Positions 8,361 through 63,561 of a DNA stretch of 64,000 nucleotides are shown one piece after another. Source of the DNA: Laetmonice hystrix (taxonomy: Eukaryota); assembly GCA_965235115.1 (NCBI GenBank), contig OZ249440.1:11470001-11534000 (forward strand), in the 5' to 3' direction. Position 1 is the first letter of the stretch. Each line of letters opens with the position of its first letter. The notes below the pieces were generated by a model, which ran no database searches, was not told the DNA's origin, and worked only from the letters and a program-made list of their open reading frames with translations. A program made the position numbers and the translations under genes.

Positions 8361-11036
8361 ATGTGGCTCGAAAGGGTGATAGTCCCTGTGGCCGTATATA
8401 TGCTCAGCCTGAGACCACTGAACCACTGCGGCCCACAAGGTTGACAGGAATGTAAAGATTCCTTAGAATTTTCCAAATTCTAGAAATCAAGAGTTGGCGA
8501 GCCCGTGAACCGAGCTATACAAAAGGTTTGGCCTGAAGGTGGTGATCATCATGGACGCGTGCGAGCGTTGACTTGGGTGATTTCATCTCTTACCTGTCTG
8601 ACGATCTGACGTAGAATCGATCAGTATCTCCGCCGCTCTGTCTCAGGTAAGGTCCCCACTCCCAGCCGTATACCCCCACACCCCCAGTGCTCACACTGTA
8701 GCAGCCATCCAGACCCCCCCCCCCCTCACCCATCCAACACTCGCCTCGTAATATACGCTGGACTGTTGTACACTCCGTATAATGATGTCGTAGGCTGCAA
8801 GAAAGTACTACCATATCGTCTTTTTATAGTTTCACACTCGTTCTTACCTCAGTACTGATGCAATAATCAATCATTTAATTACTTATTAATGTATCTCCGC
8901 TTGTGTCACCATTTAAGTTATATATTATGTTGTAATTTAATAAGGATGTACATAAGTTCATTTTAGAACTTCCTCATCCCTTAATGTATCATAAACAAGC
9001 CTGCTCCTGAAATAAACAAACGCAAACTCAAAAAAAAAAAATTAGAGCCCGCGTCCAAAATTACACCAGAACTTCATGTCCCATTAAATTTAAAATAGAA
9101 GAGTACTGTGGGATCCCCCTATCGATAAGGATCCTGTGTTTTGGGGGTTGTTTTTTCCATATCCACCTCCTGACGCTTCAACTGGGACGTAAAGAAAAAA
9201 TGACCCAGTACCTCATGGCATTATCTGTCGACAACAGTACCTGCTGGATGATTTATCTTTGTTTCGACGTAATGTTGTAAGAATACTATAGAGAAAACCC
9301 ATGTATCTTTTAGAGAGGAATTATTATCAATAAATATCCAAAGCAGACGACATAGTGCTTGCCAAGCCTCAGACTAGGCATACATGTATGAAGAACTACA
9401 AACTGGCGAGGCAGCGGACTTTCTATTTCAGTTAAATCGAATTGTTCTCCAAAGAACAGCAGAAGCGTACAGCCCAGCGTGAAGGGCGATAAAAACACAC
9501 GTATACGTAATGCCAAGTTACAGCTAGTGTTACAAGTTATAAAATGTACCTTTAATAGAAATAAGCTAAAATTGACAACACTCACAAGACACCAGTAACG
9601 TTTTTGAAGCGTTCTTACCTGAGCCTCGAGCAATGAAGCTATTTGAGACCACTGAAAGGCCGTCTTTAACATGGAGACCGATCGACTTCCGCTCAGGGGG
9701 GTTATCAAAAATTTAACTCAGTGTCCATGGCAACATCTATCATTCTATACGACGGTAAGAGAAAGAAAGCCGATGGCAGGACCCTACCTGGTACGGCTGT
9801 CATGTTTTTGTATTCCCAAACGTGATCATTCGGTGAAGTGTACTCTGGTTAGAACACTATCTGATGGCAGTTGACCATGTGCGATTTCCATCTTGTCCAT
9901 TAGTGAACTCGTGTCCCGAGACGTCAACTCTGGCGCACTTTAGCACCGAGTCGATGGCACTGTGACAGGCTGGTGTGCTGACTACATATAGCCTTTGTCC
10001 GAAATGACTTTCCAATAATATCAGTCTCCAAGGATTAATCTTTACCATTCAAATAGTCCGTTTATGAAGAGTTGAGTACGTATTAGTCAGCGTCGGTATT
10101 GCCATGTGCCTCGCTATAATAATTAACCGTTGTAGCGTGGAGGTAGTTGGCGAGTTGGACTTCTCGTTGCGCCAATGGCAAGAGCGAGACCACAACGCCG
10201 CGGGAAATGACGCGACGCGCGGGAAGCCACTGGTGTGAAGCTTTCACGGACCGAGTGGCCCTGGCCCTCACGTTATTGAGTCCAGCCCGCCACGCAGTCT
10301 GGCACCTAGCGCTTGATTGTCACGGGCTGGCCCTCGTGGTGCAAACCACGACCAGGGCAGCCATAGTTAAGTCACCTGTAAATTAGTGTAATATGGCAAT
10401 TATTCGCTAAATACCAGGGCTAGCATTGGATTCAGTTTCGCCAGGCCCATATAATGTAAACGGCCTTGTCTCCCGGCAGTGCACATTGCTGGCAATCTCC
10501 CCAAACTTCAGTTGACGGCGGCAAAGAACGAGGACCTCCTTCAAAATTTGTGTCAAAATAGCGAATAACATGGCAATATACTATGGTTCATGAAGTTTCA
10601 TGAATCAAGTGTCCTTGTCAATAAGTAGGCCTATAGGCCGATACTGGTATATTAACGACGCCTTTCCTCGCCGGAAATCGCATAAAAGTTGCTCCGTCTG
10701 TATGCACATCTTTTTCTTGAAAGAAGAACATTTTCATCAGCATCCGACGGACTGGTTAACTTGATTCCGTGATCGTTGATCGACGCCTCACAACAAGCAG
10801 CAACATACATCATACTAAACTTCATGTGTTTAGGACGTTTGGAATACGGTGTGTTTGGCTGCTGTGCCTATGGTCGGCAACAGACGGGCGTTACTATATA
10901 TAATTGATCATGTGATTAGAATCAAGCCCCGCCATTGGTTTATTGTTGCTCTGTGTATAACCTCCTGGGCGTGGAAAGGGTAAAAGTTGAGAAAATACTT
11001 TCTACGTCTGCCAACCATCTTGCCCTCAAAATATTT

Positions 11037-13637: not shown

Positions 13638-14532
13638 AAGAATCCTTGTATTGGAAGGTCTATCTTACATTCTGGCTTGCTTGCTTGTTTTTCTTAAGTT
13701 AGTGAGAACAAATCCCTCCATCTGCTGTCAGTTTGGCTCACAATCACGAGAGAGTTCGGACTTGCCCTTCAGCTATACGGAGATATTTCCAGGAAGGAAA
13801 CGACGCGTATTTCATTCGAATTAACCATTACGAGTTACAGCATTCGTTCACAAACCCTGCGGTGGATTCAATGTGAACTGATGGCAAGCGTTGGCGTGTC
13901 ATTCTTACGGTATGGCTGAGCTAGCACCATCTACGTATACTTATTCAATTCCATATGTTGGATGCACCCCCATCAGGTGAGGTCCCGTCGTTATGACTAT
14001 GTGCCAGTTCAATATATTCCCGCGCTTAATGCATGGTGTGGGAAGTAAGTTTTCCCACTCCTCTTACGTTGACGATAAATCATAAAGGAACAAGTTTGCG
14101 TCCTTGACGAAGTTTGGAGGTCCGTGTACATTCCGGGATATACACTATGACTAGCTAATATTATACAAATATGGCACTTGGTTGAGTGCAATATGAAAAT
14201 TTATGGCACGATGGCAACTGATATTGCACGACGCGAAGCGGAGTGCAATATCAGTTTCCAGAGTGTGTTTTGTGTAAACCTTTCCAGCAGGAAAAAAGAA
14301 AAATTACTTTGTAACGGGGGTTTGCAGCCCCAGTAACCCCCCCCCCTAAATCCGCCACTGAGATCTACCATGCGTTCCTGTAGACCTTTGCGAGATTCGA
14401 ACCCCCGTTCCTGTAGATCTTTGCGAGATTCGAACCCCCGTTTCGGAAACCCCTTACCAGGTTTGATGGAGAGTTCCACGCTATCATTCGCCAACTTTCT
14501 CGCAAACTTCCACCAGAGGTTGTTTTTGCTGG

Positions 14533-39492: not shown

Positions 39493-56780
<17,288 letters not shown>

Positions 56781-59188: not shown

Positions 59189-62100
59189 ATGGCCGGCGAT
59201 TCCAAATCGCAGCCGCCGGTCGGACTTCGACGGCGTAAAGCGACCGGAGAACACAAGTCGGAAACACGAGAACCTACGAAAGACATGGGAGAAAAGGTTC
59301 GCGAAGTAAAGGCTCCGGAGCTGCAACCTAATACGTATTGGCTGACGAGAATCGTCTTGCTTCGGTCTCTGGGCTTTGTCTACTGTGAGTACGTTTTTGC
59401 TGTAGAGGGTGGCGGTCGGTGGGTGTACACAGACTGGGGGGGGGGGGGGGGGGGGGTATACTACCGGTGCCTTGTATATTGTTTGGGGCATACACGGTCG
59501 GCGCTGTGGCCTAGAGTCGAGGGACAAACAGGCCGGCCTGCCCTCACGGCCTCAGTGCAGGGATCGGTGGCGTTGGAAAAGGGGGTGGGGGCATGGCCCC
59601 CACCCCGCAATAAATAAATAAATAAATAAATGGGGAGGGGGGACAGAGTATGTTTTGGCCACCCCAGACAGAAAAGATTGATACCCCAGGGTCCGCCAAA
59701 TCCCCCAGAAATGTGGTTGCAACCACAAATTCAAAAGTGGTTGCCCGACAAATAGAACTGGTTGCCCGGAATTTTTTTGTTAAAATATGAAGAAAAGCTT
59801 TAATTCGCAAAAAATAATTTGCCTCAAAAACTTGAAAAGCGTTTCCACACTCCTACTTTATGATTATGGTCATCATTGGCATCAAGATGGCGATAGCCTG
59901 GCTGGTCATTGTTCTATTGCAGTGTCTGGCTCAAAATCCTCAAACTTCGGCCCATCAACTGCAAGTTACGTTATTTGCTCGGCCGACTCTGCACTGTCAG
60001 CACCAACATTACTCTCATGCTCAGATGCTGGCTGGCGGCAACATGTAGGCTTCAGCCCAGCCCCAGGGGCCCGTTGCATAAAAAAATCCCCGCCCGCTCC
60101 GTGAAAATTGCCCCGTTAAAATAGCGGGCACCTTTTAGGTGCCCGTTAAAAAACAACAGTTAACATCCCGTTAACTGACCGTTAGCGGAGGATTTAACGG
60201 GCGGGGTTTTTTATGCAACGCACCCCAGGGCCAGGCACACATGATCATGTCAGTCATGTGACATGTACTGATGTAGTCGCCCGATGGGCGACCAATCTGT
60301 TCAATCTAGTTGCCCGGACCGAAATTCTGGTTGTCCCGGGCGCTCGGTCCCTCGATTTGGCGGACCCTGTACCCCAACATTAGCTTAGGCCTAGACATGA
60401 CATAATAGGCCTACATGCAGGAACGTAGGAAAATAGGGGAAGGCGAGGGGGGCCATCTCTCCCCCCCCCCCCCCACTTTTAAATGTGGGAGCTAGAATAT
60501 CAATCAGAGCCTTGTGAACAATTCAATGCGTTTTGGAACTACTTTTGCCCCCTGGCCTAGACCTGTATTGAATTATAGATGAGTATTAAATATTTATGAT
60601 TGCAAGGAATACCGGTAGACTAGTTTAAATGTCGAGAATACAGGCTAAAGTCTCACATTGGTTCTATTTGTTGGCAGATACACTGAAAGCTGAGTCATTA
60701 CAAGGGGTTTTGTTTTAAGATTTTCAATCTTTCTTATCAGATATTCTATGACTTTCTTTTCGAATTACATCAGAGAGACTTAACGTCATTGGAGATCACA
60801 AATAAATTGAATTTCCATCTAAAAGTTGTGAGGATTTGTGGATTCCAAACTCGCCACAAAGTTTTTGGACTGATGGTGTAGAGGGTTGTATTAGTCTTTT
60901 CATGCAAAGTATGACTGTATCAGTGGTAGATTCAACCAACGAGTATACTCGTTGATTCAACCAACAACCTCTGACGGTTGGGATGCATCAATAGGTCACA
61001 AGGTACTGGCAGAATTAATGTGTAGATATGATTGATATATATATTAAAATATACATGTTACTAAATAATTATACAGACCTCTGTCTATAAAATGTAGTGC
61101 CTGTGGTTAAATTTAGACCAATCGGTGGTTTATGTTGTAGGAGTTTCATAAATCAAACAATGTTGAGCCATTGAATATGAATTGTTTTCAAGTTTGTCCC
61201 CCAAAGTTGATTTATGAACTGCATAATGAAGGATTCCCACAAAAACCAGGCAAAGTCCAAGAATATTATAAATACTTGCTCAAGTCCAGGAAAGGTTAAG
61301 GTCGAGTCAAATTCCAGAAGACGATTCACAGTTAGGGTGTTGTTCTTTTACAGTGTAGATGTCCTATGCTAAACTATTTGGTTTATAAAAATGTGTACTG
61401 AAGTAACATTTTAGCAGCTTTTGACTCTCATATGATGTGGAATTAAATGTGGCTGAATTTAAAAAAGTGCAGTTTTCATGTTTTGTTGTGTTTTCCAGTC
61501 GCAAAAACAATGTATTGCATTGAAAAAGGGGAAATTTCTTAAAAAGCAACAATCAGAATTTTAGTCCTGGAAAATTGCAATTCTATCCTGAAAAACTCCT
61601 AGGGAAACTCCTGGAATTCTGGTTTAAGATTCAGTTAGAAGGTATGTACACCATTGTGTGTATAAAAATGAACTGCTACTTTCAATTGTTTTCAGGGTTA
61701 TTTATTTTAATGAGATTGATTTTAATGTTTCAGTTGTGGCCTTTCTAGTAGCTGCTCATCAAAATGGCGCTCTGCTGGGTGCACGAGGGCTGCTTCCTGT
61801 GCCAAAGTACCTGAGGCAGGTGAAGAATATTGCAAATGGAAACTTCATGGAACAGCTACAGCAAGTTCCTACAATACTCTGGTTCTTTAACTGGGAGGAA
61901 GTAGGTTCCATTCTATATTTATTTACAACATTCTATTTATTTACAACATAGAAATTGAAAATTGAAAAAAGTTGAAAAAAGTGCTTACAGTTCGTGTTTT
62001 TTGAAAAAAAGTTTGTGTCGATATTAGCATTTCCAGGATTTGAGCCGTAAACAAGTTAATCTTGTGTCATAAACTTGGTAGAATATCATAGATACCCCGA

Positions 62101-63561
62101 TCAAGATAATCTGTTGTGTTTCTATATTTTGTATTCTTTTTGTGAAATATAAAAAGATCTATACAAATCTGGAACATGTTTATTTACCTAGTTTTGACCC
62201 TCGGTGGATCTTAAATACTAGTAACCATTCCAGGACGTGGACTTTCTAATGAATGCCATTGCGTATGCGGGTCTAGTACTGTCTGGCATTGTCATGGTAA
62301 CGGGATGTGCCAACGTGATCCTCATGCTTACCGTGTGGTGGCTGTACCACTCCATTGTGAACGTCGGCCAGCGTTGGTATGTGTCACGAATGAGAGGTAC
62401 TCTGTGATTGCTTTAAAGGTGATCAAATTTATGGATGTACATGACAATTAAGATGGCATTTTGAATCAAACAGAGTTCACAAAATGTACAGTTTGATGCC
62501 AGTTGATGGTTTGATAGTCAAACTTTGGAACAGAATATTTTAAAGGACCTTATGATAATAGATGATTATCGTCAGAATCCATGCCAATCCGATTTTGCCT
62601 TGTACATTTGTGATGGCTTGACAGTTTTTCCTAGCCCTGCCCACTGCAGCATTATATATCATCCTCACACTCACAGTCACAGCCTGCAGAAAATTCAACG
62701 GGAGAACACGATCCTCATACATGACTGGGTTTTAACTCTCAAAACTACTTTGAGACTCAAGGCTCTGCCAGACAGACGAAACACTTCTTTCCTTCCTCAC
62801 TTTCTCATAGTCTTTTCTACTGTTACTAATTTCTTGAATTTTTCAGGAATGTTTTTTGTCACTTGGAACATGGTAGCACTAATCACTGTTACCCACAGCT
62901 TACTCTCATTGATTTTGCAGCTTTGTAACCAACTTTTTTTCAAGCCCTGCTTCCAGATAACGTCTGTTCAAAATCATTTGCATTCGTCCGTCAAGTTTCA
63001 TGAAGCTCAATTCCCCCCTCCCCCCCCCCCCCCCCGAAAAAAGAAGAAAATATGAAAACATAAAAGACAACATCATTTGCTGCACTCGTAATTTTGACAG
63101 GCTGCTGTGATGGCAGTAGAAAGTATTATATTATTATGCCTCAATCTACAGCTCAAATGAATTCTTTCTGGAATCTCAGTCCTGACGTTTTTTTTTGCAT
63201 TGAGCCTGAAAGAGTTGCAATATGGGACCCGTTAATAAACCCATACATCCTGACTAGTAGTTGAGACAAAAACATTTCAGGTATATCGAAACTAGTCTTG
63301 AAAAAGGAGGATGCACATGCTTTTGATTTTATTACATCATGCCAGTTCCAAACCCCCACCTGAACGTGATACTGATAGAGTGTGATTAACTCTGATTTTT
63401 AATCCGTTTGTCCATTAGCACTGTGATTGGCTGCTCAACGTTATAGCTTACACTGGCCTGGCCATCTCAGCCGTTGTCATGGTGACCGGCTCAGCAAACA
63501 TGATCATGATGTTGGTTTTGTGGCTGCTCTACCACTCAATCTCCAATGTCGGCCAAGTGTG
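59189..63561 (+). CDS. LMF1: Lipase maturation factor 1, 5' part (gene continues beyond window)
   Basis: Exons 59189-59384, 61734-61900, then 62234-62376 or 63419-63561. Translation LRRRKATG...TYWLTRIVLLRSLGFVYFVAFLVAAHQNGALLGARGLLP...VPTILWF...VTGCANVILM...WLYHSIVNVGQRW is collinear with human LMF1 (LRRRKTG, TFWLTRIVLLKALAFVYFVAFLVAFHQN, PTILWL, ITGCANM, LYMSLVNVGHVW). Confidence 0.92.
59687..60369. mobile_element. hAT-like MITE with 15-bp TIR and 5-bp TSD in LMF1 intron 1
   Basis: TACCC|CAGGGTCCGCCAAAT ... ATTTGGCGGACCCTG|TACCC. Confidence 0.75.
60067..60225. mobile_element. Harbinger-like MITE (CAG TSD) nested in 59687-60369
   Basis: CAG|GGGCCCGTTGCATAAAAAAA ... TTTTTTATGCAACGCACCC|CAG. 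Confidence 0.75.
62234..62376 (+). CDS. LMF1: LMF1 alternative exon 3a (143 nt, phase 0 to 2)
   Basis: CATTCCAG acceptor, GTATGT donor; encodes DVDFLMNAIAYAGLVLSGIVMVTGCANVILMLTVWWLYHSIVNVGQR(W). Confidence 0.88.
63419..63561 (+). CDS. LMF1: LMF1 alternative exon 3b (143 nt, phase 0 to 2), paralogous to 3a
   Basis: GTCCATTAG acceptor, GTAGGA donor; open frame HCDWLLNVIAYTGLAISAVVMVTGSANMIMMLVLWLLYHSISNVGQV(W); same length and phases as 3a. Confidence 0.82.

Follow-up and report, generated by a model that had tools for sequence, protein, structure and literature searches.

The window, the 64,000-nt stretch of DNA analysed here (C5:11470001-11534000; window-style coordinates plus 11470000 give C5 coordinates), ends inside a gene on the + strand. 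A model of this gene was built by aligning two full-length LMF1 proteins (P0016 and P0027) to the window and the DNA downstream of it and by reading the splice sites. The model comprises 12 exons with GT-AG at every intron (Table 1), and all 12 align in order to both proteins, the C-terminal domain included. Matches to PF06762 lie on the + strand just beyond the window end, in exons at C5:11534856-11536999, and score 32.6–62.5 bits at a cut-off of 27 bits. The predicted worm protein is 60–65% identical to named invertebrate LMF1 proteins over ~560 aa, has the CWRDLTC motif of loop C as well as the C-terminal domain, and clusters with annelid LMF1 proteins in one tree, a second tree being poorly resolved. 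These features identify the gene, by homology, as the lipase maturation factor 1 (LMF1) gene of an annelid-like invertebrate. Two of its exons occur in more than one copy: exon 3 is present twice within the window (3a and 3b), and exon 8 three times (8a, 8b and 8c), 3.3–5.3 kb past the window end. Pfam families cover neither exon 3 nor exon 8. A second LMF-family gene, very divergent and probably LMF2-like, is found at G000:C11:17921892-17937964 (-); it is the only other LMF gene in the genome, and no duplicated exons were seen in it.

Table 1. Features of the worm LMF1 gene and of its exon-8 counterpart in Paralvinella palmiformis. Positions are window-style unless a prefix is given.
Feature	Position	Strand	Remarks
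LMF1 exon 1	59189-59384	+	ATG at 59189, donor GTGAGT; open frame, tblastn to LMF1 proteins
LMF1 exon 2	61734-61900	+	167 nt, phase 0 at its end; tblastn matches to P0016 and P0027; AG/GT sites
LMF1 exon 3a	62234-62376	+	143 nt; ancestral-like copy; TGCAN
Exon 3a Cys codon TGT	62306-62308	+	within the TGCAN motif
Intron 3a-3b	62377-63418	+	1042 nt; poly-C/A-rich simple repeat and 182-aa open frame
LMF1 exon 3b	63419-63561	+	143 nt; derived, faster-evolving copy; TGSAN, HCDW start, GQVW end
LMF1 exon 4	64855-65014	+	
LMF1 exon 5	65263-65328	+	
LMF1 exon 6	66271-66444	+	
LMF1 exon 7	66910-67093	+	
LMF1 exon 8a	67314-67467 (C5:11537314-11537467)	+	154 nt
LMF1 exon 8b	68324-68477 (C5:11538324-11538477)	+	154 nt
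LMF1 exon 8c	69102-69255 (C5:11539102-11539255)	+	154 nt
Exon-8 cluster inverted repeat arms	67758-67784 and 69733-69759 (L005:6758-6784, 8733-8759)		8a-8b intron; 8c-exon 9 intron
LMF1 exon 9	70053-70153	+	
LMF1 exon 10	70315-70394	+	
LMF1 exon 11	70647-70759	+	
LMF1 exon 12	71236-71452	+	
Paralvinella palmiformis exon-8 copies	L012:13472-13625 and 13950-14103		second absent from annotated protein

The initial annotation had described exons 3a and 3b as a tandemly duplicated pair of equal length and phase with GT-AG sites and open frames, and every element of this description was recovered in place: each copy has AG immediately before it, GT immediately after it, and an open frame in phase 0. 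The peptides likewise read as it had claimed, with TGCAN in 3a and TGSAN together with an HCDW start in 3b. The two copies are identical at 88 of 143 nucleotides and 29 of 47 residues (62% in both DNA and protein), differ at 14, 10 and 31 sites in the first, second and third codon positions, respectively, and find each other reciprocally in tblastn searches with E ~1e-16. No third copy of exon 3 was detected between window position 50001 and 37 kb beyond the window end. The tandem layout is not an assembly artefact, since one contig among those from three independent DNA runs, all of the sequenced sample, covers exon 2 together with both 3a and 3b.

Within the window, which closes 439 nt past 3b, 3b might be part of another paralogue lying downstream, or of a gene duplicated only in part, the case that the initial annotation had itself set against its proposal. 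The sequence beyond the window excludes this: the same gene goes on with exons 4–7 and 9–12, which are present in one copy each and in order within the next 37 kb, starting 1293 nt past 3b, and the downstream DNA contains no second exon 1 or exon 2. Moreover, the sole other LMF gene, that on C11, is only 35–45% identical to the gene on C5. Because single copies of exons 4–7 and 9–12 follow, the assignment of 3b to a second gene retains virtually no probability. Derivation of 3b from the second LMF gene was ruled out separately, as C11 holds no exon-3-like sequence.

Long-term selection on both copies, which the initial annotation had read from their heavily diverged codons, was supported by three kinds of evidence. 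The dN between 3a and 3b is 0.31 while dS is saturated, as synonymous sites are in the exon-8 pairs too. When 55 nucleotide differences were scattered at random on 3a, 0 of 20,000 simulations kept at least 29 identical residues. In an alignment of 193 distinct LMF1 exon-3 equivalents, 13 columns of exon 3 are near-invariant (at least 90% conserved), of which 3b keeps 11 and 3a keeps 10. These tests, which span the whole time since the duplication and would miss a copy that had dropped out of use only recently, indicate purifying selection on both exons. The copies have nonetheless evolved at different rates: identity to the one exon 3 of Capitella is 69% for 3a and 59% for 3b, and in the exon tree the branch leading to 3a has zero length as against 0.9 for 3b, marking 3a as the ancestral-like copy and 3b as the derived, faster-evolving one.

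A long branch of this kind could also mean that one copy, most likely 3b, is a relic that was in use long after the duplication and is no longer spliced in, so that a single exon-3 form exists now. The donor of 3b, with 4/6 matches to the GTRAGT consensus, is weaker than that of 3a, and no 3b-type exon was encountered in any other species or transcript searched. Against this reading, exon 3b has no stop or indel, its AG and GT are intact, its polypyrimidine tract is better than that of 3a (0.72 vs 0.56), and it retains one more near-invariant column than its partner. In addition, no variants were seen within 3b in the DNA contigs of the sequenced sample, whereas 3a carries a non-synonymous variant. 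Taken together, these observations make the loss of 3b from the mRNA unlikely.

The arrangement of the gene itself constrains how the copies can be used. The inclusion of both or neither of 3a and 3b had been expected from the outset to shift the frame, and early stops were computed in the gene model accordingly. All six one-of-each combinations of exon 3 and exon 8 (2 x 3) give an uninterrupted 584-aa frame. Because neither 143 nor 154 nt is divisible by 3, double inclusion or skipping leads to an early stop: at aa 178 when both exon-3 copies are included, at aa 213 when exon 3 is skipped, at aa 423 when two or three exon-8 copies are included, and at aa 365 when exon 8 is skipped. Donor sites of the variable exons have 3–5 matches to GTRAGT, compared with 5–6 for the constitutive exons; poorer donor sites are usual for alternative exons.

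Other means of enforcing a choice between copies were sought in the introns and splice sites. No steric block or U2/U12 incompatibility is apparent, since the introns between copies measure 624–1042 nt and all splice sites are of the U2-type GT-AG class. Competing intronic RNA pairings had been raised as a possible device at 3a and 3b, and no docking/selector pairing above shuffled sequence was found there; the best inverted repeat in the exon-3 cluster scores 13, versus 11.5 +/- 0.9 (maximum 14) for the shuffles. In the exon-8 cluster, a 27-nt, 81% complementary pair scores 15, only a little more than the 11.6 +/- 0.9 (maximum 14) of 30 shuffles, with one arm 290 nt past 8a and the other ~300 nt ahead of exon 9. 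This pairing could loop out 8b and 8c, and we regard it as a candidate looping element only. The sole enforcing mechanism visible in the sequence is thus the reading frame, for which nonsense-mediated decay presumably acts as a second safeguard.

The second cluster resembles the first in its construction. Exons 8a, 8b and 8c are each exactly 154 nt long, flanked by AG and GT, and open in the same frame, with mutual identities of 44–73%. Exon 8c has MNKYY and YGKFG instead of the near-invariant MNTSF and YGAFG motifs, and the c-type exon 8 alters 6/24 near-invariant columns, among them the N-T-S sequon. The presence in one gene of two independent clusters with the same properties renders an explanation by chance or by relic exons less likely.

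A counterpart of the exon-8 cluster was found when the genomic loci of seven relatives (Capitella, Paralvinella, Owenia, Helobdella, Lineus, Lingula and Pinctada) were compared. In Paralvinella palmiformis (GCA_025642065.1, JAODUP010000648.1), two tandem 154-nt copies of exon 8 with AG/GT sites are present. The second Paralvinella copy groups with worm 8c (support 98/96) and is separated from every a-type exon, and the two have derived states in common: NM, KQKMN, an aromatic pair for TSF, and SYGKFG for TYGAFG. dN between them is 0.39, with dS saturated. This grouping, with its common derived states, identifies the second Paralvinella exon 8 as the orthologue of worm 8c; therefore, the exon-8 a/c pair is older than the split of the two lineages, both of which have kept both forms.

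The exon-3 pair has a narrower distribution. The presence of both exon-3 copies in relatives, which the initial annotation had offered as a check, was not borne out: no second exon 3 was found in any of the seven relatives (exons 3 and 4 are fused in Paralvinella), and relaxing the thresholds did not raise the count above one copy per exon in Capitella, Owenia, Helobdella, Lineus, Lingula and Pinctada. A further 28 metagenome loci, obtained with an exon-3 profile search, each have just one exon 3 and one exon 8. In the exon tree, 3a and 3b are each other's closest relatives (support 80/85). The exon-3 duplication may be specific to the lineage of this worm, because no second species with 3b was found.

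Annotated and transcript-derived sequences agree with this distribution. No 3b-, 8b- or 8c-type exon was found among annotated or transcript-derived database LMF1 sequences or Logan transcripts, and the four Logan transcripts of the nearest relative have a-type exons throughout. A search of 3b alone against 5.8 billion proteins returned no candidate, a result of little weight as the search has a length filter. The NCBI isoforms of Haliotis, Branchiostoma, Nematostella, Dendronephthya and Gigantopelta show no exon swap between annotated isoforms; they differ in length, and equal-length pairs differ by scattered substitutions only. The top matches of the representative search, P0001 and P0003, lie on short metagenome contigs without genomic context. 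An intronless LMF1 of 593 aa in 1782 nt (P0198, with cluster members P0371-P0373, on ENA contigs of 0.3–2 Mb) falls near the annelid proteins.

Mutually exclusive splicing, with exon 3 in two versions, exon 8 in three, and one of each per mRNA, is in our judgement the probable and best reading of the gene; it is favoured because both exon-3 copies keep near-invariant residues and the c-type exon 8 has an orthologue in Paralvinella. We propose a model whereby old tandem exon duplication gave rise to two clusters of mutually exclusive exons in LMF1, and the selection of one version from each cluster per mRNA would yield up to six 584-aa proteins. Exclusivity would be enforced at least by the reading frame, with wrong inclusion giving an early stop and probably nonsense-mediated decay, and the weaker donors of the variable exons probably let the choice between copies be regulated. 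A more ambitious extension, which we put forward tentatively and would not presently back over its denial, is that annelid LMF1 acts as a combinatorial isoform generator (2 x 3) of functionally distinct chaperones, the c-type exon 8 having been kept since before the worm and Paralvinella lineages split. If this were true, a single gene would supply chaperones that differ in function, for instance in the clients they serve or through one of them being regulatory, in contrast to the single LMF1 of vertebrates.

The positions of the variable exons in the protein were located on the Paralvinella protein as modelled by AlphaFold from a 40-sequence alignment (mean pLDDT 79, pTM 0.81); no solved LMF structure was found in the PDB by sequence. 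By alignment, exon 3 corresponds in this model to a confidently predicted hairpin of two membrane helices, 124-149 and 154-175 (pLDDT 91–97), which the G-x-A-N motif joins as a turn. Exon 8 corresponds to helix 343-371 followed by a low-confidence segment, 375-397, that covers the MNTSF and YGAFG motifs. In the five-helix topology, the segment after the last helix faces the ER lumen (PMC11526315). It is there, after the last membrane helix, that the c-type exon 8 changes MNTSF/YGAFG to MN[KH]Y[YF]/YGKFG, with loss of the N-x-S sequon. The annotated Paralvinella LMF1 seems to be without the exon-5 segment (GDKCWRDLTC motif), and model confidence falls there. Most differences between 3a and 3b are conservative hydrophobic swaps, with changes at the ends (D-V to H-C; R to V in GQRW). 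Because these differences fall in a helical hairpin, the most likely consequence of exon-3 choice, as judged on the predicted structure, is a retuning of helix packing or of the lipid or partner interface of the hairpin.

The initial annotation had assigned the exon pair a different purpose, the toggling of a conserved cysteine and with it of thiol chemistry. On this view, the pair would serve to turn on and off a conserved redox-active cysteine equivalent to human C145, present in the TGCAN of 3a and replaced in the TGSAN of 3b, and the new Cys in the HCDW start of 3b would compensate. Its statement on the human residue stands in part: C145 belongs to a set of "conserved" cysteines that have been mutated and for which interaction with thioredoxin and ERdj5 is reported (PMC11526315), and is thus named as redox-relevant, but its conservation does not extend to the worm's lineage. 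Among 193 distinct LMF1 sequences, the C145 column contains C in 54, A in 40, M in 37, G in 26 and S in 23, and is among the most variable columns of exon 3. Relatives have Ala (Capitella, Paralvinella) or Ser (Owenia, Helobdella, Lingula) in this position. The sequenced animal itself carries a Cys-to-Phe allele at the very same codon, as the assembly has G at window position 62307 where DNA contigs from 2/3 runs of the same sample have T (TGT to TTT). The column of the new Cys of 3b (position 2) is normally occupied by M, L, I or V. Since the column is variable, annelids have Ala or Ser, the sample carries Cys and Phe, and the new Cys sits in a column of M, L, I or V, a thiol switch is a very unlikely purpose for the pair, and exon-3 choice probably does not switch a redox thiol. 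The redox-switch idea, which had made the exon pair look special, is thereby left without support. On one haplotype-like contig, the G/T variant at 62307 occurs together with a 1-nt insertion (L005:1869) and with single-base variants at five further sites (L005:950-1794).

Mutually exclusive clusters have been described in C. elegans (PMC4165533), in Drosophila-type genes with competing RNA structures (PMC6071210), and in the vertebrate sodium-channel exons 5a/5b (PMC12772994). The LMF1 clusters resemble known clusters of tandem-duplication origin in having adjacent homologous exons of equal length and phase, canonical sites, selected copies, and a frame that is broken by joint inclusion. Unlike those clusters, the worm exon-3 cluster has no above-chance docking/selector pairing, U2/U12 incompatibility or steric block, and is known from DNA alone. 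A further parallel is offered by COQ-2, another membrane protein with a homologous pair of exons, whose mutually exclusive use is reported from helminths, annelids and molluscs (PMC7434440); in that report, whether ubiquinone or rhodoquinone is made is tied to a change in the substrate of the enzyme, and the control of rhodoquinone levels is attributed to alternative splicing of COQ-2. In contrast to COQ-2, LMF1 exon 3b has so far been seen in a single genome, as sequence. A search of the literature found no report on mutually exclusive or duplicated exons in a lipase maturation factor. The kind of splicing is already known, and LMF1 would be a new gene for it.

Vertebrate LMF1 is an ER chaperone of lipoprotein, hepatic and endothelial lipases, for which a five-helix topology model has been presented (PMC11526315; bioRxiv 10.64898/2026.09.03.749245). 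The worm protein belongs to the same family, as attested by the CWRDLTC loop-C motif and C-terminal domain, and differs from the vertebrate one at the C145 position, which is not conserved in the worm's lineage. Among the annotated isoforms examined, from vertebrates, amphioxus, molluscs and cnidarians, the differences are of length, and none is an exon swap of the kind predicted in the worm. LMF1 has been studied almost only as the vertebrate lipoprotein lipase chaperone; the exon-swap set would mark two tunable modules in it, the helix 2-3 hairpin and the last membrane helix with the conserved motif after it, and the six predicted isoforms would lend themselves, as chimeras already to hand, to structure-function work with the LMF1-deficient cell assays now in use. 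The only solved fold resembling the annelid LMF1 model, over nearly its whole length, is that of the vitamin K-dependent gamma-carboxylase GGCX (9bvq, 9wfc, 9l6q and others). The Paralvinella model aligns to GGCX cryo-EM structures over >500 columns with a Foldseek probability of 1.00 and TM 0.34–0.38; at 10–13% identity and an rmsd of ~12–16 Å, this is a relation at the level of the fold only and is silent on the exon variants.

Lastly, the introns of the gene contain several features of their own. The 182-aa open frame at window 62507-63052 (+), inside intron 3a-3b, has no Pfam match and is probably a chance frame or a decayed repeat. High-copy repeats occupy L005:4320-4862 (intron 5-6) and L005:3234-3595 (intron 3b-4), where L005:1307 corresponds to window 62307, and a third tract, L005:1967-2147, holds the poly-C/A-rich sequence of intron 3a-3b (window 63000-63050). 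At these three intron tracts, the word depth in the DNA contigs jumps from ~50 to 1,000–45,000.
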